Below are positions 21,098 to 63,259 of a DNA stretch of 64,000 nt, one piece after another (within the stretch, counting starts at the first letter, position 1; every line of letters starts with the position of its first letter). The stretch lies in contig NW_027271157.1 in NCBI RefSeq assembly GCF_040938485.1, positions 372,001 to 436,000 on the forward strand, in the 5' to 3' direction. The position numbers were made by a program, and so were the translations under genes. This DNA is from Diadema antillarum. Lineage: Eukaryota. The notes below the pieces were generated by a model. It saw nothing but the letters and a program-made list of their open reading frames with translations, did not search any database and was not told the DNA's origin.

Positions 21098-21547
21098 AGG
21101 CCCGTTCACACACAAGGGAAAAAGTGAGATTTAAAAATCGATTTTCTTATCGCGATCAAAATTTCGAAATTTTTTCCTGTGTGGACAGAAAAATTTCACT
21201 AATTTTCGCGATCCTAATTGCGATCCAACCCGCGATCCAACCCGCACTATTAGTGCGATTTTCAGAATAATCGCAATTATTTTGCCAAGTGTCATGTGTG
21301 TGATCGCGATCGAGATTCGGAAATCGGTATTTTTAATCCCATCGTTCGTAGCGTGTGAACGTCAACACTTTGGGACCGCGGGGTCGGTCTTCGGTCATGC
21401 AAGTTTCGCGCATGCGCAATTTGGCCACTGATCGTTCTTTCCTTGCTGCGAAGTGCGATTTTTCCTTGTGTATGAACGGTCAAAAAAAAAAAATCGAAAT
21501 TTGGATCGCGATTGTAATTTCGATTTTCGTTGTGTGTGCACGGGCCT
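21098..21547. mobile_element. Harbinger-like MITE, 450 bp, AAT TSD
   Basis: AAT|AGGCCCGTTCACACAC ... GTGTGTGCACGGGCCT|AAT; interior rich in CGCGAT/ATCGCG motifs. Confidence 0.7.
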
Positions 21548-22595: not shown

Positions 22596-22769
22596 TTAAG
22601 GATCCAGTTCGTCAAATGTCACGAGGAAGCCAGTCCTCTGAATGAGATGATCGCTGTGGAGTCGGACCAGTGCCGTGTCTGTTTCTACCACTACGGAGAA
22701 GGGCGTGTCTCTTCGCCCGCACAGCCTAAAAACTTGGGACATCTCTCCGCTATCTGTGGATCCCAACAC
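22596..22769 (-). CDS. ADAMTS exon 24 (second half of CUB, stop codon)
   Basis: VLGSTDSGEMSQVFRLCGRRDTPFSVVVETDTALVRLHSDHLIQRTGFLVTFDELDP*. Confidence 0.88.
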   Translation of the reverse strand: MLGSTDSGEMSQVFRLCGRRDTPFSVVVETDTALVRLHSDHLIQRTGFLVTFDELDP

Positions 22770-25700
22770 CTATATGCATGACAAGACGGAATTTGATATC
22801 CTGTCAATAGGCTTCCATATAGGATTTCAATTTCTACATAGAAGCACACACACACACTTAGACACACACATTGTATACATGTCACACACAGACACAAACA
22901 CATAATTATGATAGCATTTGTTGTCTGTACAAACAGATGGAATATCAAAGATATCATCAGAATTGGAGGTATACAGAACAGAAATATGGAACATAGAGAG
23001 CTACGGGAAAATATACCGTAATTACAGTGTACTCCCGTTATAACGAACACGGTTATAACAAATTGTTACATCGAAGAAAATAATACATCATAGTTGTGGC
23101 GTCGCCGTCTTTCATTCCGTCATGTGATGTTTTTTTTTTCACAATAAAACTGGAAATATAATGAAAACGAATATTTCGACAGACACTTGCTTCCAAGTGT
23201 ATTGAAACATTCAGTTGAAAAGGCCAAATTTGTGAATCATTCGCACTTCAAAATTCCTGTCAAAATGTATTCATAACCGTTACGAATCAGTTTCCCCGTT
23301 CATCTAAATAGTACTAGTAATCGACACCGGAAAAAGACGTTTTATTTCAAGAGTGTTATATAGAAGTTCAGGGGAAAACGAATGAAGTGTTACATATTTA
23401 ACTTGTCCTCCCACATAACGATGTTGATTCAGCAGCGACCCACGTCTCACCTCGACAATGTCAAAGACACATTTCCCGTGGGCGGGGGGCGAGTCTTCGA
23501 GGTCGAAGGTCATGAACGTGAGCTTGATCCAATAACCGTGATTGACGCCGAGTGTCCAGATGCAATCGATGTTTGGCGGGTAGGCGCCGGGGTGATTCGG
23601 TGAGGAGAAGTGTCCCGTCGAAGCAGATATTGTCAGGTTGCACGTCCCTGGAGAAGATGTCAAAATGTTTTCAAGAAGATGTAAGATGACGAAGTCCAAA
23701 GTAGTAAGTCGAGAGAAAATTAGGTACTGAATGTTATGAATGCATGAAGGCTTATATGGAGGGGTTTATTGCAAAACGAGCTAACTCCATTCTTGTTATG
23801 TTGAGATACTTGCGATTGAAGCTACTAAAATGTGAGGATGACAATGATAAAAAATATACGGATATTTTGAATAATAACTTCAACAATAATCCTTGTTATG
23901 CGGCAAGTGAGGTGTCACTTGAAATGTTTTATTATCTTGCTCTATCTGATGATGGAATTACTTTAAGGTTGAGGAAATGTCACTTAGCCAATTTTGAGAT
24001 CACTGTCTTCATAAAGATTATAGGCCTAACGTGTGTGTTTGCGGGAAAAAGGTTTCAAACAATAAATGTCATGCTCCTGGAGGCAGATTATGAGGTGAAA
24101 CGAAGGAAGATTGCACACGACTGTTTCGTCATTCATTGTAAGATTAGGGTTGTGTTGACCGTTTTGAACGAACTCTCTTAGAACCACGATTTTTGTCAAA
24201 ATGTCCATGCTATTGTTATATCAACAAGGTATTAATAGCGTAACGATCAATGATGATGTCACAATCTTGATATAGCTTGGGTTGTAACCAGGTGCGAGCA
24301 CAGTAATAGTATAAGTGCTCATGTTTCCCGTCAGGTGAGGTTGGTACGAACCAGTTTCCATGGCGATGAATGGCTATGTCATCACACATTGGTACTCTAT
24401 ATATATAGTAATGTACAGAGCTAACGCGTATAATATTACAACTGAGAACTGTTATAATCTACAAGCTCGAATGAATGATGCACGACCGAATGATCACCAA
24501 GAATGTTATTCTTTTTTCATGACAAGATCAAAAGATGGTTAATGATTATGATTACTTGTCGCAATGATGATGATGATGCAAACATTGAAATATGACACGA
24601 GACTACACTTATTACACGTAAGAGGCATTAAAGAAAGCAATGAAATGCGGCCGTAGACAGATTTGTAACAGACCAAGTGGAAAGCAAGCAACCATCCTGG
24701 TATCTGAACTACAGCAAGACAGCGAAGAAGATAATCCATTATTGTATATTATATTCTTTTCCGCAAATAATAGTTTATCGCTTTTCTTGTCAAATCCTCG
24801 CGAGATTAAGGGTTCAGGCTTATTTACATCGAGAGTAGGCCTATAGGATGTTTGATCCCTGAGGATCTGAAAAGGGCTATCTAAACAAGCATTACATTAT
24901 ACATACACCGGTGTATACATCGTTCTGTTTAGATACATGAAACAGGGATGATCATTTACATAGATGCTCACCATCATCTGTACAAGGTGGGAGATGACAC
25001 TGTTCCTGATGTACAGGCTTCGAGTCTGCACCTTCGCACATCTCCTCAGAGCCAACTTCCGCTACACCCTCCCCGTTGCTCCTGGCGCAGAATACCTTGC
25101 GCGAGCGTACGCCCATGCCGCACGGCACGTTGCAGTCTTCCCAATCACCGACCTCCCACCTGTGACGCGAAGGGGCAGTGCCAGTTACGACTTGTCGTTA
25201 TCTTCAAATGGTCACGGACCATTTTAATGAATTTCAAAAAAGTCTATTGTAAACCATGACAACCTCAGCAACAATATATCAAAACTCTCTCCAATGAAAC
25301 AGAACACACTTCTGCAACACATGTCATTATTACAACGCAATACTGTACGACTCCAACAAATTGATATTCATATCAAGTAAAACATACAAATAATTTAATT
25401 CTCTGTACTCCATCAGATTAATAAATGTAAAAAAAACACAAACAAACAACCCCAAAACCAAAACGGTACCGAACGCAAAATCGCCTGAGGAGTAAACAAA
25501 ATCGTAGAATCCTCGTACCGGACTAGCCCCCAATACAGCGAGTTTATAAAACAAATAAGATACGAAGCGCATGCTTCGTTACCTGAATGGACAGTTGAAC
25601 GTGTTGCACGTCTCTTCCTTGACCGGTGGTCTTTGCAGGTGTTGACAGTTAAAATCCTCGACAATATGCGCGTCATTTCCTACCTCCTTGCAGGTAACCT

Positions 25701-28700
25701 CCGATCTTAGGATCCCTACATGTTTAAAATACATTATGTTGCTAGACATAGACAATATTTCCGATATAAGATTATATTACAAGGTGTGCATTCCTCAAGA
25801 AAGACAATAATGAATACTTAAAGTCTTCACAATATCACTGAAACAACAGCGCATCTATAAAACTGAACAGAGTTTCGAAACACCACAAAACTATAATGCA
25901 ACCAATAACCATAACGTTTCATCTCCTCGTAAGTCACTTCATTGACAGTCATGTTGCAAAATTTGGTTAACACTGATATGTAAAGCACCTAAAGTGATAA
26001 CAACGTGGATACTTGTCTTAACGTATTTTAAACAGACTGATTTTCATCCCAGAAATCAATTCACGCCAAAATGTTTGGACACAAGCCCTATTCTAAGTCA
26101 TCTTATAATCATTGTAATTCATAGGGACGCACCTTGCCCAACAACCGACATCCTGATAATATTCCGCGGTATTGATGGCTTTGGAAGGACGTGGAGTAAT
26201 TGATTTAAATATAAAAAAGTTTGTTGTCCGATTCTTTGTTACTCTACTCACCAAATCCACAGGTTTTGCTGCAGTCAGATTTCTCCACAGCCCACTCGTA
26301 TGTCTGTCGCGGCTCTTGATTCGGTTTGTAGAGCGACCACTGAATAGCGCACTCTACGGCCGAGGCTGACGACGTATTTGTTTTATAAATCTGCAATGAA
26401 TGATAATAGTAATTAAAAAAGAAGGTTTTATCGGAATTTGTCTCACAAGATTTAACACCAGTAGTGTCATGGCAACAACAGCAGTAGAGTAAGACTAGTG
26501 TTAAGAGCACAGTGGATTTATTTTGAAAACTGCCTGTACAATTTCTGCACATTAGAATAATCTATCTCTGCGACGAAGAAAACAAGAAACAGACAAGAAT
26601 ATCATTTGTCTGTGGCTTTTTACGATGGATTACCTGGTTTTCAATAAACTTCTATATCATATGATTATGATATACTTGGTAAATTTCCTACGACACTGAA
26701 AATTCATGGAAACTGCGATACTAATCATTTTGGATATACAAAAGTATCATTTTCTTATTAAAGAGAAAATTTCCACAGGAATACATTTCAATTGACAGCG
26801 GGTAAAATTCGCTTTTCACAAATTCCTTCAATAATTTTGAGACTCGGTGGCTGAGGTCACCTGTACTGTCAAGTTGGTTGATGTAGGCCCTCTAATATGT
26901 ATGTTCTCATGGTCACCGGTGATATACGAGATCACGTCAGTACCCGTCGTGTAAGCCTTGGATCGGACTTCTTGGCCGCTGTCGCCGAAGACGAGTTGTT
27001 CGCCAGCGATCACCGCTAGGGGCGCAACGATAAAATCTCAACCGTCAGGATGAACGTGAAGCTAGCTGGGTTACACATACTATATAATTATAGTACACAC
27101 TTCACTGAATCCATCGTAATTTAAGAAATACCTAAGAACGAGCAACAGCTTTTGTTATCACACGCGTCTCTCTCGAGGAAGTTGTCAAGATATGTGAGGT
27201 CGAAATCAGGTCACCTTGCACATTGTACCGCTTATAGGCCTGAGGGGTTTGTCCATCACAGATATAAAATATACTATAGAACGTTGGTGAATTAACTCAT
27301 CTGGTCGTGGCATCTCAAAGTCAATGGTGCATCAATGAAGTTCGTTACCTACATACGCTCGCCATGGTAGTGTATACGATTTTGTTGAAATAATCAGTTT
27401 CGTGAGAAGATACGTTCAGGTCTACAATCGACGCTTAAAATGCCTAGGTATATGGCCAAAATAACTGACATGTGTTAATTTCTCTCATACTTTTCAATGC
27501 CAGGATGCATAGTAGGCCTACCAAAATGAACTTGATCACTGAATGGCCTTAACATACAAGCTCAAGAACTGCGATTAAGACATATTGCTGACTGTCGAAT
27601 GAGGTGACAGTGTGGTTAAAAATGATAAGCAAAACTACACAATAAATACTTGTTTTAAAAGACGCAAAAATGTATTAAAATTACGACAACATATGACACT
27701 GTGTATAGATTTTTGAAAATCTCTCCATCCCCCTCTCCTTTCTTCGTCTTCTTCGTCGTCGTCTTCTTCTTCTTCTTCTACTTCCTCTTCTTCCGGGTTT
27801 GGGTAATAGGCTCTAGGTTCGGATTGGGAATTGATAGGAAAGGGTTGAATGGGACGTGCAGGGGTCTCCGAAAAAAGAAAAAGAAAAAAAAAAATGTAAC
27901 ACTGCTTACCGAGGTGGCAGTCATTGTTGAAGTTGGTTACATTTACAAACGTTGATCCGTTAGGAATTTCTAAAACGGGCTCGAACCCTGCAGTCAGAGA
28001 AGAAAACAATGTAGACGATGGTAAATTTAAAAATAAGAATAAAACTAAAAGGAATACTGTACATGTTCTTTTTCAAGTATCGTGCGCGTAAACGCTCCTA
28101 TCGCAAGAAAGCACGCCTTGATTTCAGCAATTATACAAACCTATCTTTGCACAGATATATCAGATTTTGAATGCTGACATTGTGTGATGTTATAGATATG
28201 GCTACTGGAGAATTTACAATTCCAAGAAGAGAAAGAACAAAAAACAGAAGGGAGGAGAACTAGAATTACAAATTAAGCGTTGAACGAGAGCAGACCGTTA
28301 GCAACGTTTTGTATGTTTGTCTTTCATTAAACAGGATTTTAACATCTGTCTTCCAGAAGATTAACAATCGCATTGATTAATGTGATGAAGAAATATATTG
28401 TGCGTAGGCCTTTTCAACAAGAGAAAATCAAAACATCCACTTGCAAACTTTTCATGTTCATCAAGTCTGTTATTTTGCTTTCTACTCTGTCATGTGTATG
28501 TGTCTTGATCAAAAAGATTGGTCTGGATATACATCTGTAATATTTTTACTTGAACGTTTTCAGATCCATTTCAAGAACTTAAAACACTGAATATCCTGAT
28601 ATTATTCTGTCAACAAATACTCGCCTCAAACTTTTGAGCAACCAACGTGACCAAGTCATAATTCGAGCTGACAATCAATGAAAGATATTACATTGAATTG

Positions 28701-31700
28701 ATGAATCATATCAAAACTACAACACCGGTGTTGCTCACAAAAGGCGCAACGTGACGATGTGATTGTTTATATCAGACTTATTGTCAAAACTATCAGAATG
28801 TGTAAAACTGTATCAAAGTGTATATGCAAAGTATTAACCCTCTGTGCATGACACAAATTTGACCGTTCACAGCGGTTACCGCAGTGAAACACTTTTAAGG
28901 ACAAACAATTTTCCCTACTCGAAATGACAGCAGGTGGATTCTCACCGTTCTCGATGTTAATTCTGTTCAAGTCACTATCAAGGTCGCAAGTTGTCTGGTT
29001 ACCACCGCACACGCCACAGGCATCGTAGACACGGCTAGAATTCGAGTCGAAATCGCACGCGAAGTTCTACTGAAGTAAAACAATGACAAGGATACCAGAG
29101 GCAGAGAGAGAGAGAGAGAGAGAGTTACATGTACAATAATGAACAGCGAATAAGGATTAATAAAACTACCAGCGACATCGAGTGCCAGCTTATAGGGACA
29201 GGACGAATATAAGATTCAAGAGAGCGCTTGCGCATTTAAGCAGTTGGCATGTTCCGAACGTCCGAGTGGTTTGCCAAGTGAAATCGATTCCTAATGTCAG
29301 TATGTCGAAAATGGCCGAAATAATGTCAATCTCAGTTCGTCCATAGCTAACCATAGTCACAGCATCAAATAACGCCCTCTTAAATTCCGGGTCTGTGCTC
29401 CTTTAACCCACTCTGGCCAAATCCAAAGACACTGGCAGTGTATATCGACACGTTGCCATGGCAAAAACAGAGTAAGATACAATATGAAATCAGACATTTT
29501 GAAGTCCACTGAAAATGATATTGATAACATATTGATCGGATAATATAAAGACACTGGCAGTGTCATGATATCAACACGTTGCCATGGTAATAACAGTGTA
29601 AGATACATATGAAATCAGACATTTTGACTAAACTAGTCCACTGAAAATCATATCACAAGTTGGAGAAACATGAATTATTCGTACCGTGTTTTTTTTTTCT
29701 ATCTGCTCAACAAAGCTACTACTTTGGAGCCACCACGTGGAAATGCAATTAAGACATCATAATGTTGAGGACTTGAGGTCATGTATTCAGAGGTTTCCAT
29801 CGTTATCAGTAAATTTTCATTGTTATCGTATATTTTTAATTGTTAGTTATCTTATTCAGCATGTGTCAAGAAATCGCTACTGTCATAACTGTCGACTGCA
29901 ATCATGGACACCGACGTCATAATATAATCTAACGTCAATTTCATCATTTCTATTGACATCGTTATCATTATCTATCGTTTGTGTTTGTCGTTTGTTTCTT
30001 TGACAATAGTTGTATCAAGGAGCTTTGAAGCTCCATGGTTGTAGCAAGAAACCGAGCAAAATGCGGATCGAGCAAAAAAAAACGAAAATAAATCAATTAA
30101 TAAAAAAATATATAGCAGATTCTCCTGTTATCACTGACCCGGCATTCTCCGCCTACACACATGGCGACTTCTCGATTGAACACGTCCACCACATCGCATC
30201 TCGTACCATCGACGAAAGCCCCAAACTTGACGACGATTTCCCGCGAATACGACACGCAGCTCTGCTGACAGAATTCGTCATCAGAAATGCCTGAACCATT
30301 AATACATGAGAACGTGAAAAAAGAGACGGAGAGAGAGAGACGAGGGAGATTGGCAGATGTTCATAATAACCTTTTCAAAATACATGTATACACACTTCCC
30401 AGAGTTTTGAAAATAAATACAAAGACTAACAGCGCATGCATGCACATTAGCGACAAATCAAAGTCAGATTGTTTAACGATATCCCGCAACCAGTCAAATA
30501 ATCATTCCGATGGCATTAACATCACGAACCCCCTGCTACAGCGGTGGTTGGATACGATGTGCTCACGTTTCCTATCGGTGTACGGTTCCCATAGCAACAG
30601 CTCTCCCTTGTAAGGCAGGGCATCCCTCGTCGCGCATTGCTCCTGGGCGTACCTGAGTTGGTTTCGGTCGACGCAGTCCTGATGAGGAAATCAGGCAAGT
30701 GATCAATTCATTTCTTCGATTTTTTTTTTTTTGTATTTCCCCCCTTCTCTCTTCTTTTTTTTTTTTTTTAACGCGAGACTAAAAAAAAAAAAAAAAAAGA
30801 ATATGCACAAGACAAGGAGGAACAATAGCAAACACTGTAACGATTATGTAGGTACCTATAGTTTACAAGTTGTGGGGAAAAAAATCGTTCATTAGCCAGC
30901 AATCTGTTTTTGAATTTCTATCTCTAAAGCAACGTTTACACTTTGGCGAGTTGGAGTCGCGAGTCGTGTGCGAGCTGTGCGAGCTCCAACTCGCGTTAAC
31001 TCGCACAAACTCGCGCGAAATGTATTTTTTTTTCTGGAATTTGCATGAGTGATATAAGACTCAACGCCGAGTTCACTACGCTCGCTGTACGAGTGAACCG
31101 AGCTCGAAACGAGACATACCGAGCTTAGTATGAGTTGCAGTGACCTTTATACGACTTAAAGCGAGCTTTAAACGAGTTGTCAAGATTTTATTACGAGTAA
31201 TAAGAGTTTTATACGATCGACGGGCGGGAAATGCACATTTTTGGCGCTCAAAGATGGATGCCAGAAGCATTTTCGCTCTGCTTGAAGAAGAAGAGACCCT
31301 GATCTTCTGCACGATTGGTGCGACCCTGTTGTCAAGGAGGCGCCGCAGAAAAAAAGAAGATGCTCAAGAGAGGACCAAAATGCTTCAAAGGAGGTTTTGG
31401 ACAAGACCCTGGTTGTTGAGGAGGCCAAAGTACGGACACTATGAGACGCTGATGGCGGAGTTAGCTGGTGAAGACCTGGACGGTCTTGCGGGCGGTGATG
31501 ACAAGGCGAAAGAAGACCTTCGTAGATCTCTGACCTCATCTGCTCGCTGGAGGAGCTACAACATAATAAAAGGATACCAGTCACTTCAATACTCATAAGG
31601 GTACATCGTTTATATTTCACCATGTTACACAAAACTAGTAAGTTATTGAGCAGTTAACCAGGAATGATATACGGTATCACGAAATTATCTCGAGAGTACT

Positions 31701-34700
31701 GAAACAAAAAAAAAAAAAAAATCACAGTTAACCAAAATGTTTTGCACACGTAATAAAACATATTTTGAGATCTTGAGATTAATGACAGTAATGTAACACT
31801 TTACTGTTCCTTTTTTTTAATACAGAACAATGTTCATTATCATAATGTTTAATCACCTATTAATGTATCCCTGAAAAACCCCAAGAACTGAATAATTTTA
31901 GTAATAATTTTGTGCGTTATTTTAATTCATGTTAGTGTATGGGACAATGCCTGATTAAAATTTTTGTTCACTGCAACACTTAGTGTTCAAAGCTTGTTTT
32001 AATATCGAGTGTTAAAATGTACTTGCGAACCTTTATTCCTTAACATCTGCCATATTAATTCAAATATAATTATGTAGGTGAATATATACAAAGCTACAAT
32101 ATCAGCGAAATTGAGAACAGTTTGAAATTTACATGTTAAAAGTAAGTAACTCCTTTATAACATTGAGATTAAATATTTTCAATTACTCGGATACAACTGG
32201 TTGACGAAAATGTAAATTTAAAGAAATGCCTATCGTGAAAGCATGCATATGATTTTACTTTGACGGAGTTAACTCAAACAAATAAGATTTCTGTATGGTC
32301 GAGATGAAATGTCCAAATCGCAATTTACGTGTTTAATCTCTTGTTCTGATGTTAGAGGTAATACATGTATTTAACATTATGTTCAGTTAAAAAAAAATGA
32401 GTTGCATGTCAAAGTGCTTTCAGAATATATGTTTGGATGTAAAAGTCAACATTAAACATAATTATGCTTCACAGTAAGCATTCTGTCCTTCCAGAGTGAA
32501 AACCTAAATCCTCATGGACAACTGTACTGGAATTATCATTCTAGCAGATGATAATTACAATTTTCATTAAAAAAATCTGGGCTGCATGTCCTTCCATGTT
32601 TTCAGAATATATGTTGGGATGTAAAAGTTAACCTTTCAAAAAATTATGCTTCACAGGAATCATTTAGTGCTTCAAAAGGTGAAAACCTAAAACTTCACCC
32701 CACTGTTCTGGAATTATTATTGTAGCACATAATGATAATAAAAAATTATAAACATCTTGGTAGTGAATGTGTGTCGTTAGTTATTTTCATATTCTTGGTT
32801 GTTCTAATCAATCTGAACATAATTAGACAGGCCATGCAGCTCATTTTAAGAATAATTTATTTTTAAAAATCGATCAACCACAATGTTGCAGTGGCCTTAA
32901 TGTACGTGTTGAGTATCCTTTTCACCGGTTTTATATCATGGCGTTATCATGATAAACACACGAACGGAGTTTTACCCTCTAACAATATGGTGGATTAGTC
33001 ATTCTTGTTATTCGTGCATGTACTTGTATTAAAAAATAAATGTTCATAAAATACATGTATTACTCGATCCGTACTGTCTTTTCTTTACAACAATTCACAT
33101 TCACCATTTCCAGCAGTTCTCTGTCCTTGGCTTCTTCAGAGGCCACCTTGGGGGTTGTACACCTCCCTTTCATTTTGCCCTTGCCCTTGCCAACAATTGA
33201 TAAGTTGGTGTAAGAGGAACCAGCTTCACGCTCTGCTGGGGGTCATCAGCTTCTTGGGTGGTCTGGGCCCCGTTGCTAGAAACTTTGCGTTTAAACGCAA
33301 CTTGCAACTGATTGTCACTGGCCAATCAAAATCAATGTTGCATGCATGTCTTCTTCATAGGGCAGACCCTGAGCCAATCAGAATGGTTGTTTCAAAATTA
33401 GCAATTATTTGCAATTGATTGCAACTTTCTTGCAACGGGGCCCTGGTCATTCTTACTGCTGTCATCATGCCCATCAGTCTCAGCATCCTGGTTGGGGGAA
33501 GAGTATTTAATTCGTCTTCTCTTGGTTGGGATGCTACTTGTCCTTTAGAGGTCTGCAAAAAATAGATAAATCACTCGATCAACATCTTTTACAAGAAAGA
33601 CACACGATGGCGATTTCTATATTTTGTTTAAATGTAGCTTATTACAGATTTTAATAAAATCAAATGCATATTTACCCTTCCCAATGTTCTTCCTTTCATC
33701 CTCACAATATGTCCCTCCAGGACGCGGAATGTATTGAGAATCCACTAATCTCTCTCACTGTAAGGTGTGTTTCTGGTCCCCTTTCCAGACTTTGGGTTCG
33801 TCAGACGGCTGTACTGTGTCTTCATAGACTTGAGGAAATTGTTTAGCTGTTCAAATGAAAAAAAAAATCGAACACTGGGAATTTAGATCACATAAATTAA
33901 TGGAAAGAAACAAACAACTATATTAAATTCTTGTTTCTCATACAGTGAAGTATATAGCTAGCTAACGGAATAAACGAAATGTGGGGGTCAAAATTTTCAG
34001 GACTAAATATTATGCATGTCATGTTGTCAGTTGTTACAGGATTTTCGATAATTATGACAATCATAATCATAGTAGTAATCATGGTAATGAATTCAACAAA
34101 ATATATTTAGCGAAACTCCGTTTTGCCGCCAGAGCCCTCCCCCCTAAATAATAGATATTAATATTCATCTTCACTTACCGGAGCACACCGGATCGTACTC
34201 CTTGGCCTTCTCTTCGATTAGCCGTCTTCTTTGCAGTATCCTTGTATGACTTTAGTCGCCTGTTATACAGACAATCGTGATCTCTGTACCACTCTGCTAA
34301 TTCTACTTTTTGCTCTTCAGTGAATGTGTATGCAGTGAGATGTTTTTCGTCTCTTCGGGGTGGACTTCTTAGGGATGGACTTCTTGTTTGGGGTGGACTT
34401 CTTTGTTCTTTTATTTCCGTCTTCCCTGGGGTGCCAGACGGAGAACCTTGTGAGTGGAGAAAAATGGGTTCATTTTTCTCCCCAACCAGTTCGACAGGAG
34501 AGGCCTGATGCTCAGTAGTTTGAGCTTGGACCTGGTCTAGTTTGGTGTCTTGTTCTTTTACCTGTCTCTGCTCGTCATTGATCTCCTCTTCCGTCTCCAT
34601 TCTCTCTTCCTGCACTTCTTCTACCTCTACCCTTGTTTGAATGACATTATTCTTTCGGTGTTTAACTACCTGAATGGCCACAACTCTTGGATCTCTTGAG

Positions 34701-36949
34701 TCGGGGCATATTCCTCTCCTATTTTTGCTAGTTGTAATAATACAGTGACAATAGCCGTTTTAAAAGTACGTGTACATGCGTGGGTCGATCAAAATGTGCT
34801 CTCATTGTAAAATATATATGGAAAAATATAGAACACTGGATATTTATTATTCAGCTGGCATGTCAATGTGCACTTGCAACGCAATCTGACTAAACTCATA
34901 CGAAACTCGCTGTAACTCGGGGTGCTCGATCTGAACTCACGCTAATCTCGCGGGCACCTCTCCTTCACTCGTAGTACGATCGCAGTGCTCGTATCTCGCT
35001 CTAGTAAACTCGGAATGCACTCGCGTATACTCAAATATGGCGAGTTATTACGAGTTATTACGAGTTTATCTCGAGCTTCTTTCGAGTTATTGCGAGTACC
35101 GCGAGTATATAACGAGTCTAGCTGAGTTCAGCATGAGTTAAGCAACGTTTACACTTTGGCGAGTTTGAGTCGCGAGTCGTGCGCGAGCTGTGCGAGCTCC
35201 AACTCGCGTTAACTCGCACAAACTCGCGCGAAATGTAATTTTTTTTCTGGAATTTGCATGAGTGATATAAGACTCAACGCCGAGTTCACTACGCTCGCTG
35301 TACGAGTGAACCGAGCTCGAAACGAGACATACCGAGCTTAGTATGAGTTGCAGTGACCTTTATACGACTTAAAGCGAGCTTTAAACGAGTTGTCAAGACT
35401 TTATTACGAGTAATAAGAGTTTTATACGATCGAGGGACGGGAAATGCACATTTTTGGCGCTCAAAGATGGATGCCAGAAGCATTTTCGCTCTGCTTGAAG
35501 AAGAAGAGACCCTGATCTTCTGCACGATTGGTGCGACCCTGTTGTCAAGGAGGCGCCGCAGAAAAAGAGATGCTCAAGAGAGGACCAAAATGCTTCAAAG
35601 GAGGTTTTGGACAAGTCCCTGGTTGTTGAGGAGGCCAAAGTACGGACACTATGAGACGCTGATGGCGGAGTTAGCTGGTGAAGACCTGGACGGTCTTGCG
35701 GGGGGAGATGACAAGGCGAAAGAAGACCTTCGTAGATCTCTGACCTCATCTGCTCGCTGGAGAAGCTACAACATAATAAAATGATACCAGTCACTTCAAT
35801 ACTCATAAGGGTACATCGTTTATATTTCATCATGTTGCACAAAAGTAGTATAAGTTATTGAGCAGTTAACCAGGAATTATACGGTATCACGAAATTATCT
35901 CGAGAGTGCTGAAACAAAAACAAAAAATCACAGTTAACCAAAATGTTCTGCACACGTAATAAAATATATTTTGAGATCTTGAGATTAATGACAGTAATGT
36001 AACACTTTACTGTTCCTTTTCTTTAATACAGAACAATGTTCATTATCATAATGTTTAATCACCTATTAATGTATCCCAGAAAAACCTCAAGAACTGAATA
36101 AATTTAGTAATAACTTTGTGCGTTATTTTAATTCATGTTAGTGTATGGGACAATGCCGGATCAAAATTTTTGTTTACTGCAACACTTAGTGTTCAAAGCT
36201 TGTTTTAATATCGAGTGTTAAAATGTACTTGCGAATCTTTATTCCTTAACATCTTCCATATTAATTCAAACATAATTATGCAGGTGAATATATACAAAAC
36301 TACAATATCAGCGAAATTGAGAACAGTTTGAAATTCACATGTTAAAAGTAAGAAACTCCTTTATAACACTGAGAATAAATATTTTCAATTACTCGGATAC
36401 AACTGGTTGACGAAAATGTAAATTTAAAGAAATGCCTATCGTGAAAGCATGCATATGATTTTACCTTGACGGAGTTAACTCAAACAAATAAGGTTTGTGT
36501 ATGGTCGAGATGAAATGTCCAAATCGCAATTTACGTGTTTAATCTCTTGTTTTGATGTTAGAGGTAATACATGTATTCAACATTATGTTCAGTTAAAAAA
36601 AAAAGAGCTGCATGTAAAAGTGCTTTCAGAATATATGTTTGGATGTAAAAGTTAACATTAAACATAATTATGCTTTACAGTAAGCATTCTGTCCTTCCAG
36701 AGTGAAAACCTAAAACTTCACCTCATGGACAACTGTACAGGAATTATTATTCTAGCAGATGATAATTACAATTTTTATTTAAAAAATCTGGGCTGCACGT
36801 CTTTAAATGTTTTCAGAATATATGTTGGGATGTAAAAGTTAACCTTCGAAAAAATTATGCTTCACAGGAATCATTTAGTGCTTCAAAAGGTGAAAACCTA
36901 AAACTTCACCCCACTGTGCTGGAATTATTATTGTAGCAGATAATAATAA

Positions 36950-37001
<52 letters not shown>

Positions 37002-40000
37002 ATAAGTAACAAAGCTGCAACAAAGTTCATGCTGTATTCACCAACGGTTTATTTCTTCACACAAATTTTCGGGCGTCTCGCCGCCCTTTCTCAAGTGTTG
37101 ATACTGAGAGAACAATAACAAAATTAAGCCATAACAATATATTGCAACCGTGTTACTAAGGATGCGCGCTTTAACGCATCCATGCTAGGCATCCTAACAC
37201 CCAGCGCGCATCCTGGCAACAGTACAATGTTACGTCATAATGAAATTACAATGAGTATAAAGCATACATGAAAAAACTTGGCACGACTGATACAGAAGTA
37301 ATTCCTCTGAATACGCAGCTGCGGTGGTAATGTAAAAGCAGTGCATTATTTCTTTCAAAATTCAACATACACATAAATTAACTTTAATTCTAGTGTATAG
37401 ATAATCTTTACATAATCTGAAATTATCATGATCAATATAAACATTCGATTTTTTTAAATCAAACTGAATCGTCACACTGATGGTTATGCAAAATATGTGC
37501 AAGCAGTTTACCATCCCTTTCAAACTTCAGCATACACATACATTAACTTCCAAATTCTGGTGAGTAGATAGTCTTTAAATAATCTGAGACTATAGCATGA
37601 ATATGAAATACGTGAAAAATCATATTTTTCTTCTTTTGATTAAATAGATACGTCACAATACGTCTCGGAGTGGAAAAAAGACTGGTTCCAAGAAATGGTT
37701 AAAAGGAGCGTCAGCATTATATCACTCAAGCAATATAATGATAAGATCTATTGCAGCGGGGTAAACGGGAGAACATACAACAATAAGCGGCGCACCTACT
37801 TGTAAAAAGTGTAGTTCGTGAGCCATGATAGATCTATGTTCATGCCCTGTCCCTGGAAGCTTCGTGTGCGGATGATTGTTTTTAGTTCTTTCACGTGTCT
37901 TTCTTCAAATGCTTCCATGTCCTTGTATAAAATGCAACATTGCAGATCTGTTAGTGTGTGATTTGGTTTGTTGAAGTGTTGTGCGACTGGATGTTGTGTT
38001 TGACTTCTAATGATTGTGCTTTTGTGATTGTTGAAACGTTGTCTAAAATTTGTTGTTTCTCCGATGTAGACAGCCAGGGGACATTGCTTGCATGTAAGGC
38101 TGTATACTACATTCTTGCTGTTGCAGTCCCCTGACGTCGGATGGAGGGTGTGGCCGGAGCCAAGTGTGATATCTGTATCTGTGATTAGGTGAGCGCATAT
38201 TTGACATCGTTTGTTTCCACATTTATGATTTCCAGTAGGATTGATTGTTCTGTTGACTCGAGATCGTGTAAGCAAACTCTTCAGGTTGCGTGGCTGTCGT
38301 TGTGCATGTAAGGGACGTGCTGTTAACTCGGGAGCTACCGATTGGACTTGTTTGAGAGTAGGCCATTCTTTCCTCACTTCCTTCATGAACTGTTGTGATG
38401 TGGGATGATATGTTGTTACAAAGACTTTGCGTGTGTGTGAGTCTTTGGGTTTCAGATTATCATGATGTAGTAAGGATGAGCGTCTTTTTGCTATCGCGCG
38501 GTCCCTACCTGCTTGCACAATGTCTAACGGGTACCCCGCTGCAACGAATTTTTGCCCCAGCTTCAAAGACGCATCCAGAAATTCCTTGTGATCAGAAATG
38601 ATTCGTCTGTAGCGGAGCATTTGACTGTACACAATTGACCTCTTAATATGATTAGGATGGAAGCTGTTGTACTTAAGATACGTCTGTCTGTCTGTAGGTT
38701 TGTGGTAAACAGACGTGTTCAGCTTCCCTCCTTCTTTGCGGATAGTCACATCAAGAAAGTGTACTTCTGACCTAGAGCTGTCCATAGTAAATTTGATGTC
38801 GGGATGAACCATGTTGAGCTTGGAGTGGAACTCCGACAGCTGTTCGTCAGAATGGGGCCAAATGAGAAAAATGTCGTCAATGTAGCGGACGAACATGCTA
38901 GGTTTTAGAGTTTCTTTCGAGAGGAATTCTTCCTCGAGTACGGCCATAAAAATACTGGCATACGCTGGCGCAAATTTAGTACCCATGGCAGTACCCTGAG
39001 TTTGTAGAAAGCATTCATCATCAAATGTGAAGTAATTATGTTTCAAGATGAACTGGGCAAGACGACAAATGTCTTCTATGGGCATGTCAGAAGAAGGGTC
39101 GTGTTTGGTCAAAAATCTACGCAATGCATTAACCCCATCGGAGTGAGGAATGTTCGTGTACAGACTGACGACATCCAAAGTGACTAGAGTGCAATTTGGA
39201 GGAAGCTGAATGTTGTCGAGTCTATTAAGAAAATCATTGGTATCTTTTACATAGCTCTCGACGTTATGTAAGACCCCTTGTAGATACTTGTCAATGAAAG
39301 CTGACATCGGTTCAGTAAGTGAACCTACACTGGAAACAATTGGCCGTCCAGGCGGAATGATCTTATGTTCTCTCGATAACTCAGTAATTTCGGAAGTTTC
39401 CAAATCTTCAGCATTTTTGTCAGTGGCATTTGCTACCATCGTCGGAAGTTTATGGATCTTAGGTAATGTGTAAAATCTACTAGTTACCGGCTTACTTGGT
39501 ACAAGTTGTTTCGCTTCTCTCTTATCGATGTGTTTCAGGTTATTACAAAGAGTCTCAGCTTCCTTCGTGAACAAGCTCGTAGGGTCACTGTCAAGCTTCT
39601 TGTAGAATCTCGTGTCGGACAGTTGTCTTTCCGCCTCGTTGATGTAGTCCGCTGTATCCTGGATGGTGACGGCTCCCCCTTTGTCAGCAGGCTTAATCGT
39701 GATGTCAGCGTTGTCACGCAGGGATCGGATGGCGTCTTGCTGCTTCCGTGATATGTTCGATGAGGGTTCCCGTTCAGTCTCCTTCAGCAGCTTGTCGAGG
39801 TGTCTCTCCACATTGCTCACAAACGAGTCGATGAAGGGGTTTCTTCCGCTGGGGACAGCAGGGCGTCGCTTTGCTACCATCGTGCGACGATGGTAGCAAA
39901 TGCCACTGACAAAAATGCTGAAGATTTGGAAACTTCCGAAATTACTGAGTTATCGAGAGAACATAAGATCATTCCGCCTGGACGGCCAATTGTTTCCAGT

Positions 40001-43000
40001 GTAGGTTCACTTACTGAACCGATGTCAGCTTTCATTGACAAGTATCTACAAGGGGTCTTACATAACGTCGAGAGCTATGTAAAAGATACCAATGATTTTC
40101 TTAATAGACTCGACAACATTCAGCTTCCTCCAAATTGCACTCTAGTCACTTTGGATGTCGTCAGTCTGTACACGAACATTCCTCACTCCGATGGGGTTAA
40201 TGCATTGCGTAGATTTTTGACCAAACACGACCCTTCTTCTGACATGCCCATAGAAGACATTTGTCGTCTTGCCCAGTTCATCTTGAAACATAATTACTTC
40301 ACATTTGATGATGAATGCTTTCTACAAACTCAGGGTACTGCCATGGGTACTAAATTTGCGCCAGCGTATGCCAGTATTTTTATGGCCGTACTCGAGGAAG
40401 AATTCCTCTCGAAAGAAACTCTAAAACCTAGCATGTTCGTCCGCTACATTGACGACATTTTTCTCATTTGGCCCCATTCTGACGAACAGCTGTCGGAGTT
40501 CCACTCCAAGCTCAACATGGTTCATCCCGACATCAAATTTACTATGGACAGCTCTAGGTCAGAAGTACACTTTCTTGATGTGACTATCCGCAAAGAAGGA
40601 GGGAAGCTGAACACGTCTGTTTACCACAAACCTACAGACAGACAGACGTATCTTAAGTACAACAGCTTCCATCCTAATCATATTAAGAGGTCAATTGTGT
40701 ACAGTCAAATGCTCCGCTACAGACGAATCATTTCTGATCACAAGGAATTTCTGGATGCGTCTTTGAAGCTGGGGCAAAAATTCGTTGCAGCGGGGTACCC
40801 GTTAGACATTGTGCAAGCAGGTAGGGACCGCGCGATAGCAAAAAGACGCTCATCCTTACTACATCATGATAATCTGAAACCCAAAGACTCACACACACGC
40901 AAAGTCTTTGTAACAACATATCATCCCACATCACAACAGTTCATGAAGGAAGTGAGGAAAGAATGGCCTACTCTCAAACAAGTCCAATCGGTAGCTCCCG
41001 AGTTAACAGCACGTCCCTTACATGCACAACGACAGCCACGCAACCTGAAGAGTTTGCTTACACGATCTCGAGTCAACAGAACAATCAATCCTACTGGAAA
41101 TCATAAATGTGGAAACAAACGATGTCAAATATGCGCTCACCTAATCACAGATACAGATATCACACTTGGCTCCGGCCACACCCTCCATCCGACGTCAGGG
41201 GACTGCAACAGCAAGAATGTAGTATACAGCCTTACATGCAAGCAATGTCCCCTGGCTGTCTACATCGGAGAAACAACAAATTTTAGACAACGTTTCAACA
41301 ATCACAAAAGCACAATCATTAGAAGTCAAACACAACATCCAGTCGCACAACACTTCAACAAACCAAATCACACACTAACAGATCTGCAATGTTGCATTTT
41401 ATACAAGGACATGGAAGCATTTGAAGAAAGACACGTGAAAGAACTAAAAACAATCATCCGCACACGAAGCTTCCAGGGACAGGGCATGAACATAGATCTA
41501 TCATGGCTCACGAACTACACTTTTTACAAGTAGGTGCGCCGCTTATTGTTGTATGTTCTCCCGTTTACCCCGCTGCAATAGATCTTATCATTATATTGCT
41601 TGAGTGATATAATGCTGACGCTCCTTTTAACCATTTCTTGGAACCAGTCTTTTTTCCACTCCGAGACGTATTGTGACGTATCTATTTAATCAAAAGAAGA
41701 AAAATATGATTTTTCACGTATTTCATATTCATGCTATAGTCTCAGATTATTTAAAGACTATCTACTCACCAGAATTTGGAAGTTAATGTATGTGTATGCT
41801 GAAGTTTGAAAGGGATGGTAAACTGCTTGCACATATTTTGCATAACCATCAGTGTGACGATTCAGTTTGATTTAAAAAAATCGAATGTTTATATTGATCA
41901 TGATAATTTCAGATTATGTAAAGATTATCTATACACTAGAATTAAAGTTAATTTATGTGTATGTTGAATTTTGAAAGAAATAATGCACTGCTTTTACATT
42001 ACCACCGCAGCTGCGTATTCAGAGGAATTACTTCTGTATCAGTCGTGCCAAGTTTTTTCATGTATGCTTTATACTCATTGTAATTTCATTATGACGTAAC
42101 ATTGTACTGTTGCCAGGATGCGCGCTGGGTGTTAGGATGCCTAGCATGGATGCGTTAAAGCGCGCATCCTTAGTAACACGGTTGCAATATATTGTTATGG
42201 CTTAATTTTGTTATTGTTCTCTCAGTATCAACACTTGAGAAAGGGCGGCGAGACGCCCGAAAATTTGTGTGAAGAAATAAACCGTTGGTGAATACAGCAT
42301 GAACTTTGTTGCAGCTTTGTTACTTATCTTTTTATCTTGCCAACACGTGGACTACCTTATCAACATATATATATATATATATATATATAAACATCTTGGT
42401 AGTGAGTGTGTGTCGTTCGTTATTTTCATATTCTTGGTTGTTTTAATCAATCTGAACATAATTAGACAGGCCATGCAGCTCATTTTAAGAATATTTTTAA
42501 AAATCGATCAACCACAATGTTGCAGTGGCCTTAATGTACGTGTTGAGTATCCTTTTCACCGGTTTTATATCATGGCGTTATCATGATAAACACACGAACG
42601 GAGTTTTACCCTCTAACAATATGGTGGATTAGTCATTTTTGTTATTCGTACATGTACTTGTATTAAAAAAATAAATGTTCATAAAATACATGTATTACTC
42701 GATCCGTACTGTCTTTTCTTTACAACAATTCAAATTCACCTTTTCCAGCAGTTCTCTGTCCTTGGCTTCTTCAGAGGCCACCTTGGGGGTTGTACACCTC
42801 CCTTTCATTTTGCCCTTGCCCTTGCCAACAATTGATAAGTTGGTGTAAGAGGAACCAGCTTCATGCTCTGCTGGGGGTCATCAGCTTCTTGGGTGGTCTG
42901 GTCATTCTTACTGCTGTCATCATGCCCATCAGTCTCAGTATCCTGGTCGGGGGAAGAGTATTTAATTCGTCTTCTCTTGGTTGGGATGCTACTTGTCCTT

Positions 43001-46000
43001 TAGAGGTCTGCAAAAAATAAATAAATCACTCGGTCAACATCTTTTACAAGAAAGACACACGATGGCGATTTCTATATTTTGTTTAAATGTAGCTTATTAC
43101 AGATATTAATAAAATCAAATGCATATTCACCCTTCCCAATGTTCTTCCTTTCATCCTCACAATATGTCCCTCCAGGACGCGGAATGTATTGAGAATCCAC
43201 TGATCTCTCTCACTGTAAGGTGTGTCTCTGGTCCACTTTCCAGACTTTGGGTTCGTCAGACGGCTGTATACTGTGTCCTCATAGACTTGAGGAAATTGTT
43301 CAGCTGTTCAACTGAAAAAAAAATCGAACACTGGGAATTTAGATCACATAAATTAATGGAAAGAAACAAACAACTTCATCAAATTCTTGTTTCTCATACA
43401 GTGAAGCATATAGCTAACGGGATAAACGAAATGTGGGGGTCAAAATTTTCAGGACTAAATATTATGCATGTCATGTTGTCAGTTGAAGACCTGAATATAA
43501 GAACGACCCAAGTCCAATTTTTGGCCAAATTCAGTTTGACATGGGAAATTGTAGTTTATGCATGGACTCATCTTGTGTATAAATGATAAATCCTAATTAC
43601 CCCCGGAAGTGCCTGAAATGAATGAGTTAAATCTGATATTAATGTAAAAGTGAAGGACTTGGGTCATTCTTACATTCATATAGTAGCGCCCTCTCTCATC
43701 CTTCTCTCATCTCTATAGCAGAGTATCATGTATATGAATCAAAGAACGACCCAAGTCCATATGAATCAAAGAACGACCCAAGTCCACCACACAAAATGGC
43801 CTCTCCACAATTAATGTTCAAGTTCAAGTTCAAGTTCAAGTTCATATTTATTCGTTTTTTCCACAATATATAACACAAACATAAATCTCACTTTCTTAAG
43901 TGACAAAATCAATGCATACAATTGTACAGAGAAAACAACAATAATAGCACAAAAAAAAAACTAACAGTATCGATACATTGCAATATAGTTGCTAAGACAA
44001 CGAAAGTGAAATAGTTTTCAATATAATTATGCACTGTGTGAAAAAAAAAAACGGAGGGACCCACTAAAAAGACAGAGCTTGTAGAGTGTGGGCCCCTCGT
44101 TATTAGAAGTCCGATGTAAAAATTGAATTGAAAACAGCAAAAAATCCGCACAAAAAGTTCGTCACAAAAAAGTTTGGAAGCCCACTAAGAGACAGACGAA
44201 CAAACAGTTATGCATAGAACAACTACAAACAGAGTAATGAACATGCAACAGGACTGGGACAGCAACAAGACTACTTGTAGGAGGAAAAACAAGAAAAAAA
44301 AACTGACATGACGACACAAGAGGAAACAAGACTATAGCGTGATAAAGAGGTAACAAAATAGACAGGAATATGCAACACAGATGACGATCCTCGGGGGTTT
44401 GAGGAAGAAAGAGAAGTAAATGTTAATTGTCATAAATATGTTTTAATTTGTATATTCAATGTTGCCTTCCCATCACAGTTGAATAGAATATTATTGGACA
44501 AATAAAAATATATGAAGTTTTCTTTAGTTTACTCGAAATGGTCTTCCATGGACTTGGGTCGTTCTTATATTCATATACTCAGTTGTTTACAGGATTTTCG
44601 ATAATTATGGCAATCATAATCATAGTAGTAATCATGGTAATGAATTCAACAAAATATATTTAGCGAAACTCCGTTTTGCCGCCAGAGGCCCCCCCCCCCC
44701 CACCTAAATGATAGATATTAATATTCATCTTCACTTACCGAAGCACACCGGATCGTACTCCTTGGCCTTCTCTTCGATTAACCTAATTGTCTTCTTTGCA
44801 GTATCCTTGTATGACTTTAGTCGCCTGTTCTACAGACAATCGTGATCTATGTACCACTCTGCTAATTCTACTTCTTGCTCTTCAGTGAATGTGTATGTAG
44901 TGAGGTGTTTTTCGTCTCTTCGGGGTGGACTTCTTAGGGGTGGACTTCTTGTTTGGGGTGGACTTCTTTGTTCTTTTTTTTTTTCGTCTTCCCTGGGGTG
45001 CCAGACGGAGAACCTTGCGAGTTGAGAAAAATGGATTCATTTTCCTCCCCAACCAGTTCGACAGGCGAGGCCTGATGCTCAGTAGTTTGAGCTTGGACCT
45101 GGTCTAGTTTGGTGTCTTGTTCTTTTACCTGTCTCTGCTCGTCATTGATCTCCTCTTCCGTCTCCATTCTCTCTTCCTGCACTTCTTCTACTTCTACCCT
45201 TGTTTGAATGACATTATTCTTTCGGTGTTTAACTACCTGAATGGCCACAACTCTTGGATCTCTTGGGTCGGGGCATATTCCTCTCCTATTTTTGCTAGTT
45301 GTAATAGTACAGTGACAATGGCCGTTTTAAAAGTACGTGTACATGCGTGGGTCGATTAAAATGTGCTCTCATTTTAAAATATATATGGAAAAATATAGAA
45401 CACTGGATATTTATTATTCAGCTGGCATGTCAATGTGCACTTGCAACGCAATCTGACTAAACTCATACGAAACTCGCTGTAACTCGGGGTGCTCGATCTG
45501 AACTCGCGCTAATCTCGCGGGCACCTCTCCTTCACTCGTAATACGATCGCAGTGCTCGTATCTCGCTCTAGTAAACTCGGAATGCACTCGCGTATACTCA
45601 AATATGGCGAGTAATTACGAGTTATTACGAGTTTATCTCGAGCTTCTTTCGAGTTATTGCGAGTATCGCGAGTATATAACGAGTCTAGCTGAGTTCAGCA
45701 CGAGTTACAGCGAGTTAGCAAAAATTTTGAACATGTTCAAAAATTTTGGGACTGCTCACGACTTCAAGGAGAGTTGTCCCGAGCTTGAACGAGCTCCGCC
45801 GAGCCATGCCGAGTTGTCGCGAGTTATCCCGAGTTACATGGTGAGCTTCACGCGAGTTATCGCGAGTGCCTCATTTTGGCAACTCGCCTTAACTCGCCAC
45901 AGCTCGCCATGTCAACTCGCCAAAGTGTAAACGCTGCTTTACAGCGAGTTAGCAAAAATTTTGAACATGTTCAAAAATTTTGGGACTGCTCACGACTTCA

Positions 46001-49000
46001 AGGAGAGTTGTCCCGAGCTTGAACGAGCTCCGCCGAGCCATACCGAGTTGTCGCGAGTTATCCCGAGTTACATGGTGAGCTTCACGCGAGTTATCGCGAG
46101 TGCCTCATTTTGGCAACTCGGCTTAACTCGCCGTAGCTCGCCATGTCAACTCGCCAAAGTGTAAACGCTGCTTAAGATACTTGTGATTCCATTTAACTTC
46201 CAACATACTTTAACAAAATATATCTGTATTCCGATTATTACCAAGAACCCCTGCCCGAATGATTTCCGTGACAGCCACAGGAAGCTTTTATTCTTTGAGT
46301 TAAATCTCTAGGTAATTTCTAGTGATGATGACGATGATGATGATGATGAAGATGATGTGATGNNNNNNNNNNNNNNNNNNNNNNNNNNNNNNNNNNNNNN
46401 NNNNNNNNNNNNNNNNNNNNNNNNNNNNNNNNNNNNNNNNNNNNNNNNNNNNNNNNNNNNNNNNNNNNNNNNNNNNNNNNNNNNNNNNNNNNNNNNNNNN
46501 NNNNNNNNNNNNNNNNNNNNNNNNNNNNNNNNNNNNNNNNNNNNNNNNNNNNNNNNNNNNNNNNNNNNNGTGGACAGTCATGACAGTGGAATGTGTGCTG
46601 GCGTGAGAATGATGAGGATAGAGCGGGAAAACACGGAAATACGTCAGGTGAGTATAATGGAATCATAACATTCAGTAGTGAGTGGATATTACAGTAGTGA
46701 TGATTATTACTACGACCGTTGTTTACATTATCGTCACTGTCATAATGAAGCCAAGGTCATGATTATCATTTTACAAGCAATACCATCTCTTCTCCGGGAT
46801 ATACTCACGAATATGTTACACACTTCAAGGATGGTATCCAGACCGATGCAGTTGGCTCCCCCAAAGGAAGGCCTCCATGTATGAACAGATATAGTATAGG
46901 AGCGGGAGACGTACATGGAAGTGTTATAGGCCTACCAGTAATGAAGTTTGATGGGCAGTGCACACATCCTCGTTGATAATGTGTCAACAGCGCCACCTTG
47001 TGGTACAATCCATGTGATCAGCAGTGAAGTAAACAAATCACTCACAATAGACCAGTTCGTAATTCCACTTTGCGCATGAGCAGCAAAAAGGTCATTTGTA
47101 CCAAGAGGCATTTGGGTTTATTAATTCACTGAGATAAGCATCTGTGATGTGATGATTGATCCTTATCTAAATAGTGCTTGCTAGCACATCCACCTGACAG
47201 CAAGCCTGGTATTTGGCATTATCAAAAGAAAAAGGTTGTTATTGCATTCAATACAAAACGATGAATTAGATGCCTGCTAAAGTGTCAACTGACGGACTAT
47301 TCTGGTCACCTGGTCTAAACTCAAGTTCATACTTTGTTTGAACACGAATTCCATAAATTGTTATGTCGGGCAAGCTTATGCATCATACCGCTTTGAAAAC
47401 GAGTGAAGTGCCTAACCAACTGAGAAAACACAAAGGTCATTCGTACCAAGGTGTACATGAGCTAATTACGAACTGGCTTATACTATTCTCTCGCAAATCT
47501 CAACTTCTAACTTGTGTGAAGTGTCTAAGCTTTATATAGTTCTAAGATAGAAATAGAAACAACAAACCCAGTCCACGACAGTCCTTCAAAGACACAGAAC
47601 AATGTCAATTTATAAATATTTACATAATTACCTCATGATAATTTGACGAAATTGGCCCGAAACCTGTTGCCATTACGATGTTCACCATTAATATCGATAT
47701 CATTGTCATGCGTTTCGAGATTTGTAATTACCTGGGACTATTGCAGTGTCTATATTTCTTCCGGATTCCTCCACCGCATGTTCGCGAGCACTCGGAGAAG
47801 TTCGGTTCCCATTCGGACCAGCCGCCGTGAATTGGATCGGGCCCACGCTCTCCGTAATCCACACATTCTCCACCTATACACCACTGACTCAAAATAAAAC
47901 CGGAGGGGGTGATTCAACGAGGAGCTATGGCTAGTTCCCCCCCCCCCCCCATACACCATTGGGAGAAATTTTCGAGAAGAGAACGTCATGGTGATCGCAG
48001 CTACAAACCATGGTTTGTAAATTTAACGAAATGAGGATAATGAAAAACACTATACAGTCAATCATTATCAAAATGGTCATGCAAGATTGTTTCCTCAGTT
48101 TCCTTGTTGAATGGGGGGGGGGGGGGGGGGGGGCTTTGCAGATAGTTTGAAACAATAAGCCAGTTCGTAATTAGCTCATGTACACCTTGGTACAAATGAC
48201 CTTTCTTTTTTCTCAGTTGGTTAAGCACTTCACTCATTTTAAAGCGGTATAATGCATAAGCTTGCCCGACATACCAATTTATGGAATTCGTGTTCAAACT
48301 AAGCATGAACTTGTGTTTAGAAGAGGTGACCGGAATAGTCCGTCATACCAGTTGACACTTTCGCAAGCATCTAATTCATTATTTCGTATGGAATGCAATA
48401 ACAACCTTTTTCTTTTGACATTGCCAAATACCAGGCTTGCTATCAGGTGGATGTGCTGGCAAGCACTATTTAGACAAGGATCACATGAATAATCATCACA
48501 TCACAGATACTTATGTCAGTGAATTAATAAACCAAAATGCTCATGCGCAAAGTGGAATTACGAACTGGTCTATTTTCTCAATTTACCCTTGCCATGTGGA
48601 TTGGCAAGGTGATTTTTTCCTTACTTACATTGATCCTAATTTGTTTTCTTAATTTATCTATCAAGGTCCCCTTAAACATGGGAGTAGAATTGGCTTTGAG
48701 TAAACACACTCCTATCCCTCACAACCATGGTAGCACTTCATTGTTGGAACGTACCTTACCCTCCCCACATTCAGTGCCGTCTGCAGGTGGGTACTTATTG
48801 GTGCTGCATACTAGGACGCCCTCATTCGTTCGCCCGCACCACAATTTCTCACAGTCATCCTGCAAGGAAGAAAGAGATGTGCACACAGGTATGTTTATTC
48901 ATCTGCCGTGATCCCAACGGAAAGTATTAACATGACTGTAACTTCGCTCCTGATGGGCATTTTACGGCTTTCACCTCTGAAGAGTGATGAAAATTGATCT

Positions 49001-63209: not shown

Positions 63210-63252
63210 TTCCCGCGCGCTTCCCGCTTTCCGTTTGAACCAGACAATCACG

Positions 63253-63259
63253 CTTTATA
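63253..63259 (-). promoter_or_regulatory. Candidate TATA box of the ADAMTS gene
   Basis: TATAAAG on the - strand, 44 nt upstream of the ATG. Confidence 0.4.

Follow-up and report, generated by a model that had tools for sequence, protein, structure and literature searches.

A compact ADAMTS gene with a terminal CUB domain in the sea urchin Diadema antillarum, a member of the ADAMTS13 branch

How does a sea urchin ADAMTS metalloprotease come to end in a CUB domain, when among vertebrate ADAMTS proteins CUB domains are peculiar to ADAMTS13 (Kelwick 2015, PMC4448532; Brunet 2015, PMC4349717)? The question is raised by a 64,000-nucleotide stretch of the Diadema antillarum genome (contig NW_027271157.1, positions 372,001 to 436,000 of the forward strand; hereafter the window), which is AT-rich eukaryotic DNA carrying one long minus-strand gene. 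A first-pass annotation, made from the letters alone, had read positions 22596-26390 as the end of an ADAMTS gene with two distal thrombospondin type 1 repeats (TSRs) and a single CUB domain in an apparently invertebrate genome. It had stated, in agreement with the two papers above, that vertebrate CUB-bearing ADAMTS proteins are confined to ADAMTS13, and had proposed either an ancestral state or an independent exon-shuffling event as the source of the CUB. The invertebrate is indeed a sea urchin and the architecture is borne out by exons, Pfam profiles and a public protein model. We consider it very likely that the gene encodes an intact secreted ADAMTS zinc metalloprotease of the ADAMTS13 branch, with a CUB tail that was inherited rather than locally shuffled.

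Domain layout and terminal exons

The public model XP_071492695.1 (P0151; 982 residues, Diadema antillarum, RefSeq name 'ADAMTS6-like') matches the C-terminal exons of the window at 100% over their in-frame cores, from the Cys-rich region through the CUB and stop codon, and uses exactly the five-exon joins listed in Table 1. Two N-terminal matches of the same protein to the window carry gaps. Pfam was run exon by exon on the DNA and full-length work was done on this protein. The protein contains Reprolysin (2e-21), ADAMTS_CR_2 (residues 368-436), TSP_1 (450-502), ADAMTS_CR_3 (507-615), the spacer (627-719), two TSP1_ADAMTS repeats 3′ of the spacer, and a CUB domain at residues 862-977 of 982 that covers the full profile (1-110 of 110, E = 9.6e-19) and has four Cys. 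Neither PLAC (PF08686) nor GON-1 (PF08685) was found in P0151 by Pfam. The domain order, from the Reprolysin protease through disintegrin-like domain, TSR1, Cys-rich region, spacer, TSR2, TSR3 and one CUB to the stop, is that of an ADAMTS protein with an M12B catalytic domain, and the zinc motif HExxHxxGxxHD is present as HEIGHTLGMEHD in exon 55318-55509 and in both P0151 and a second public model, P0119. Over the metalloprotease, disintegrin-like, TSR, Cys-rich and spacer (M-D-T-C-S) core, the best solved-structure match is ADAMTS13 (6qig, E 5.8e-86); the best solved-structure relatives of the CUB are cubilin, PCPE1 and the MASPs.

The limits of the interval 22596-26390 coincide exactly with the stop codon and with the first base of the exon that opens TSR2, and this exon matches residues 706-753 of P0151 at 100%. 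The tail of the gene is formed by TSR2 (two exons), TSR3 and one CUB (two exons), all on the minus strand. Acceptors of the terminal exons are all AG, the donors are GTGAGT, GTAACG, GTGAGC and GTGAGA, and phases are compatible at four of four junctions, with split codons for G, R and G. The earlier statements that the CUB exons continue the TSR3 frame, carry the stop codon and begin at a phase-1 intron therefore stand, since sites and phases fit and XP_071492695.1 has the same joins. The absence of a PLAC domain holds as well: tblastn with the C-terminal parts of relatives, from the stop codon to the start of the window, revealed no more TSR, CUB or PLAC coding potential, and hence no second CUB downstream of the stop.

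Table 1. Terminal exons and other features of the ADAMTS gene in the window
Feature	Position	Strand	Intron phase	Evidence or remark
TSR2a exon, first half of TSR2 (IYKTNTSS...WAVEKSDCSKTCGF)	26252..26390	-	0 to 1	AG acceptor, GTGAGT donor
TSR2b exon, second half of TSR2	25583..25715	-	1 to 2	Pfam TSP1_ADAMTS 0.0025
TSR3 exon, entire TSR3	24972..25159	-	2 to 1	Pfam TSP1_ADAMTS 9.1e-15
CUBa exon, CUB profile 1-60	23451..23647	-	1 to 0	codon split as G/GG; Pfam CUB 5.9e-13
CUBb exon, CUB profile 69-110, C-terminal ...FDELDP	22599..22769	-		Pfam CUB 0.0084 (exon alone)
TAA stop codon	22596..22598	-		adjoins CUBb; retained in second haplotype
Upstream exons of the ADAMTS gene, part of the prodomain through spacer	26861..62852	-		tblastn of P0151, Pfam on P0151
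ATTAAA hexamer, first 3′ of the stop, 1261 nt away	21332..21337	-		polyadenylation-like, candidate

Searched against protein representatives, the first CUB exon drew mainly multi-CUB proteins, cubilin-like ones among them. The useful match was P0119 (945 residues), which is 91% identical to the exon and matches it at residues 824-888; its cluster consists of XP_071479936.1 and XP_071492695.1 from D. antillarum and XP_072171836.1 (P0152) from D. setosum, all named 'ADAMTS6-like'. P0119 derives from contig C1540, the second haplotype of this locus, whose DNA is about 90-94% identical to the window in exons and introns alike and whose copy of the gene retains all frames, splice sites and the TAA. 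Between the haplotypes, the ratio of nonsynonymous to synonymous polymorphism (pN/pS) is 0.38 for TSR2 to CUB and 0.22 for the comparable upstream exons (catalytic end to spacer). The tail is under constraint, less tight than that on the upstream exons.

Residue by residue, the haplotypes differ at 15 of the 187 positions encoded by the TSR3 and CUB exons (22599-25159; TSR3 4/64, CUB 11/123), and pN/pS within the CUB is about 0.5. No amino-acid differences occur in TSR1, in the TSR2a exon or where the catalytic domain ends. The tail is more polymorphic than any other coding part. They also differ in spacing. The distance from CUB exon to catalytic exon is 31.9 kb on the window haplotype and 17.1 kb on G000:C1540, a difference of about the size of a stack of transposons (30925-46175, about 15 kb) that breaks up the upstream exons within one intron. 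Because the difference in spacing approximates the size of the stack, the stack looks like a haplotype-specific insertion.

At the other end of the gene, the P0151 model starts at 62852 and has no signal peptide. An exon at 60721-60903 on the minus strand (VPEYEIVYPRQL..., VPEYEIVYP...) is skipped by XP_071492695.1 and matches residues 53-109 in the prodomain of the S. purpuratus ortholog. Upstream lies an open reading frame (ORF) at 63087-63254 (minus strand) that begins MDLSIYLALVAVFLLYIVEG, with a hydrophobic, signal-peptide-like start. The N-terminus of XP_071492695.1 is probably incomplete. Beyond the 3′ end of the gene, a tetraspanin gene at 11054-13942 on the plus strand (three exon ORFs, Pfam Tetraspanin positions 14-186, CCG motif) runs in convergent orientation and marks the boundary of the ADAMTS gene on that side.

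Placement on the ADAMTS13 branch

Relatives were collected by a word search with P0151 and by a profile search, followed by Pfam scans. From their protease-to-spacer region we built a maximum-likelihood tree (67 proteins by 607 columns, LG+C20+F+G4), leaving out Patiria (long branch, odd composition, inserted TSRs) and six redundant vertebrate rows. In this unrooted tree, a 28-row clade unites the Diadema gene with vertebrate ADAMTS13 (ultrafast bootstrap 98; Shimodaira-Hasegawa-like approximate likelihood ratio test, SH-aLRT, 94). The clade comprises 4 echinoid, 13 lophotrochozoan and 7 vertebrate ADAMTS13 rows together with a crinoid, a hemichordate, an ophiuroid and a holothurian, and smaller sets recover the same grouping (SH-aLRT 100 with 44 rows, 99 with 32 rows). 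The affiliation with ADAMTS6/10 implied by the RefSeq name was rejected: the approximately unbiased (AU) test, run on 32 rows under LG+G4, goes against uniting the echinoid genes with ADAMTS6/10 in one clade (difference in log-likelihood 103.6, p 0.0002), and PLAC was not found in the gene. As judged from these alignments, the gene belongs to the ADAMTS13 branch and not to ADAMTS6.

The distribution of CUB domains follows the same division. All 17 CUB-bearing rows fall within the ADAMTS13 clade and none of the 39 rows outside it carries a CUB, a pattern that takes four state changes on the tree. For vertebrate ADAMTS13 the CUBs were taken from the literature, as Pfam sees just one of them, weakly, in a salamander.

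A survey of this architecture turned up CUB-tailed ADAMTS proteins in echinoids, a crinoid, Patiria, molluscs and a nemertean. Within echinoids, D. setosum P0152 has a single terminal CUB (714-829 of 834), and the C-terminal layout of Diadema recurs in Lytechinus variegatus P0153 (57% identity), with the CUB at 722-833 of 838; the Lytechinus protein ends in ...SELDP and that of Diadema in ...DELDP, and their CUBs are 50% identical. Elsewhere, we found terminal CUBs in ADAMTS proteins of the crinoid Anneissia, which has the layout spacer, 2 TSR, 2 CUB, and of Patiria, three Haliotis, Littorina, the chiton Liolophura, Pomacea and the nemertean Lineus. No further domain follows the CUB in any of them, and the chain ends 4-7 residues after it; in the crinoid, two CUBs stand in this place.

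Weighing the alternatives

That the CUB tail came to the gene by inheritance within the ADAMTS13 branch is, on the comparison of sequences and the tree, the more economical and favoured reading. The competing account is that an echinoid ADAMTS gained a mobile CUB module on its own, with its likeness to the tail of ADAMTS13 a product of convergence. A phase-1 intron precedes the CUB, as it does many shuffled extracellular modules, and Brunet 2015 (PMC4349717) likewise traces the ADAMTS13 CUBs to domain shuffling. Several observations also weigh against inheritance. The window CUB is closer to CUBs of the cubilin, PCPE and MASP type than to those of its own clade, with up to 37% identity and 82 bits to cubilin-type CUBs versus 23-33% identity and at most 69 bits to the non-echinoid CUBs of the clade, and it has no detectable similarity to vertebrate ADAMTS13 CUBs. 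Some members of the clade have no CUB in their models, and the four state changes noted above count on the same side. Branching within the clade departs from the species tree, in that lophotrochozoans and vertebrate ADAMTS13 come out as sisters; long branches lead to several rows, and the tree is unrooted. As the CUB sequences show no orthology, homology of the tail CUBs rests on their position and on the tree of the host genes, and independent capture keeps some probability. Against such capture, every one of the sampled CUB-bearing ADAMTS proteins lies in one clade, the CUB occupies the same terminal place in each case, and a single gain with subsequent losses accounts for the tails of echinoderms, molluscs, a nemertean and vertebrates more parsimoniously than repeated capture does. 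We regard independent shuffling as unlikely; of the two origins first proposed, the ancestral state is the one we favour.

Two further explanations concern the gene itself. The main product might end after TSR2, with the TSR3 and CUB exons seldom or never joined to it, or belonging to another transcript. What supports the joins is splice logic, conservation and the NCBI model, and a word search with P0151 residues 790-982 returned no transcript-derived fragment, a result that is uninformative on expression. Moreover, the S. purpuratus ortholog model P0154 (902 residues, 54% identity) stops before TSR3 and the CUB, ending in ...CNEFNCPHK exactly at the TSR2b/TSR3 boundary. In Diadema, this boundary is followed by a 423-nt intron (25160-25582, minus strand) with two ATTAAA hexamers; reading past its GTAACG donor adds one Arg codon before a TAA stop. 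Because P0154 ends at this boundary and the Diadema read-through meets a stop, a short isoform that lacks TSR3 and the CUB and ends in the intron after TSR2 is conceivable; these features, taken with the hexamers, hint that such a form is conserved, and we treat it as possible. As an account of the main product, truncation has little to recommend it: splice sites are canonical and phases compatible at all four junctions, frames, sites and stop are retained in the second haplotype despite 6-10% DNA divergence, pN/pS is below 1, and D. setosum and Lytechinus share the TSR3-CUB end. For a separate CUB gene, there is no start-codon context or signal peptide, and the downstream neighbour lies on the opposite strand. 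We judge it very improbable that the full-length tail is an artefact or a minor form. The remaining suggestion, that this is the counterpart in Diadema, by orthology, of the sea urchin egg receptor for sperm bindin, EBR1, can practically be dismissed. EBR1 is also an ADAMTS-type protein with TSP1 repeats, CUBs and a final CUB, but it carries 24-27 TSP1 and 17-20 CUB domains (PMC13672419), in contrast to three TSRs and one CUB in 982 residues. In addition, the Diadema genome has a separate EBR1-like locus, and S. purpuratus has EBR1 as well as the separate ortholog P0154. By domain layout and by that second locus, the gene studied here is set apart from EBR1.

The second locus spans about 90 kb at G000:C95:1867666-1958512 (plus strand, L004-L014). 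It combines prodomain and reprolysin exons (Pfam Reprolysin 8.4e-11) with many TSR exons that alternate with at least 4-5 CUB exons, a layout like that of EBR1, and a haplotig of it lies on contig C506. Two other candidates for EBR1, P0010 and P0087, were rejected as pure CUB or CUB-EGF proteins.

Comparison with known CUB-bearing ADAMTS proteins

The gene is an ordinary, already modelled member of a known family, and a claim that its architecture is novel is not supported. The first-pass annotation had named an earlier description of this architecture in the lineage as grounds for refutation, and that largely applies. RefSeq already holds it for D. antillarum, D. setosum and Lytechinus. EBR1 has long been known, with 3700-4600 residues and tandem CUB/TSP1 repeats (Kamei and Glabe 2003, as cited in PMC13672419); since it carries both elements, the combination of ADAMTS and CUB has, by that secondhand account, been known in echinoids since 2003. 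Two ADAMTS13-like genes of S. purpuratus have been in the literature since 2006, as PMC4448532 cites Angerer 2006. An 'ADAMTS13-like' cDNA from a sea cucumber (PMC8746392) was set aside as not relevant, since it has TSRs alone. What we did not find in print, and regard as mildly new, are the CUB-tailed members in molluscs, a nemertean and one brachiopod-related row, and with them a lineage that predates deuterostomes.

Brunet 2015 (PMC4349717) placed the gain of the CUB at the base of the deuterostomes. The survey points to a greater age for the CUB-tailed ADAMTS13 lineage than the published accounts give it, and we lean, by a small degree, towards a bilaterian ancestor as the source of the ADAMTS13 CUB tail, which would make it neither a vertebrate novelty nor a gain at the deuterostome base. 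One lineage would then run through echinoderms, hemichordates, molluscs, a brachiopod, a nemertean and vertebrates; the echinoid layout (spacer, TSR, TSR, CUB) and that of the crinoid, with its two CUBs, would lie near the ancestral one, and the TSRs would have multiplied in vertebrates. On that reading, the lineage acted on something other than von Willebrand factor long before haemostasis of the vertebrate kind.

The CUB-tailed invertebrate proteins share with the Diadema gene the clade, the M-D-T-C-S core and the CUB as last domain. The layout of the Lytechinus protein, named 'ADAMTS4-like', is identical to that of the Diadema gene. The mollusc and nemertean proteins, unlike it, are 1536-1949 residues long, with roughly 500-900 additional residues separating the CUB from the distal TSRs, and three of the mollusc models contain ShK domains. 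All are uncharacterised predictions with inconsistent names (Anneissia 'ADAMTS18-like', Lineus 'ADAMTS6-like'), and the RefSeq names (ADAMTS4-, 6-, 10-, 12- and 18-like) mask a single family. ADAMTS6 and ADAMTS10 themselves share the general ADAMTS core with the Diadema gene, but they end in PLAC.

With an intact catalytic motif and a full ancillary core, the product would be a secreted protease. By analogy with the distal TSR and CUB domains of ADAMTS13, the TSR2-TSR3-CUB tail may be an ancillary module with a part in regulation or in recognising the substrate. To go by its four Cys and by the acidic residues in FDLE, VFD and HSD, which on assignment by eye from the consensus stand where they usually do, the CUB probably belongs to the calcium-binding, ligand-binding type. 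A complex prediction of the Cys-rich region and spacer against the CUB, aimed at a closed conformation like that of ADAMTS13, scored 0.00 and carries no weight on binding either way. The CUB-tailed genes could be used to ask what role the distal TSR-CUB tail had before von Willebrand factor.

Compared with vertebrate ADAMTS13, the Diadema gene stands on the same branch of the protease-to-spacer tree and likewise has distal TSRs followed by a C-terminal CUB, without PLAC or GON-1. It differs in having three TSRs and one CUB where ADAMTS13 has eight TSRs and two CUBs, so that it does not reproduce the layout of the vertebrate enzyme. The echinoid orthologs have a prodomain of ordinary length (Pep_M12B_propep in P0154), unlike ADAMTS13, and vertebrate ADAMTS13 CUBs barely or never reach the Pfam CUB model that the Diadema CUB matches in canonical form. 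The importance of the gene is modest. It offers, in an invertebrate, a compact relative of ADAMTS13, an enzyme of clinical importance, and its CUB is easily recognised.

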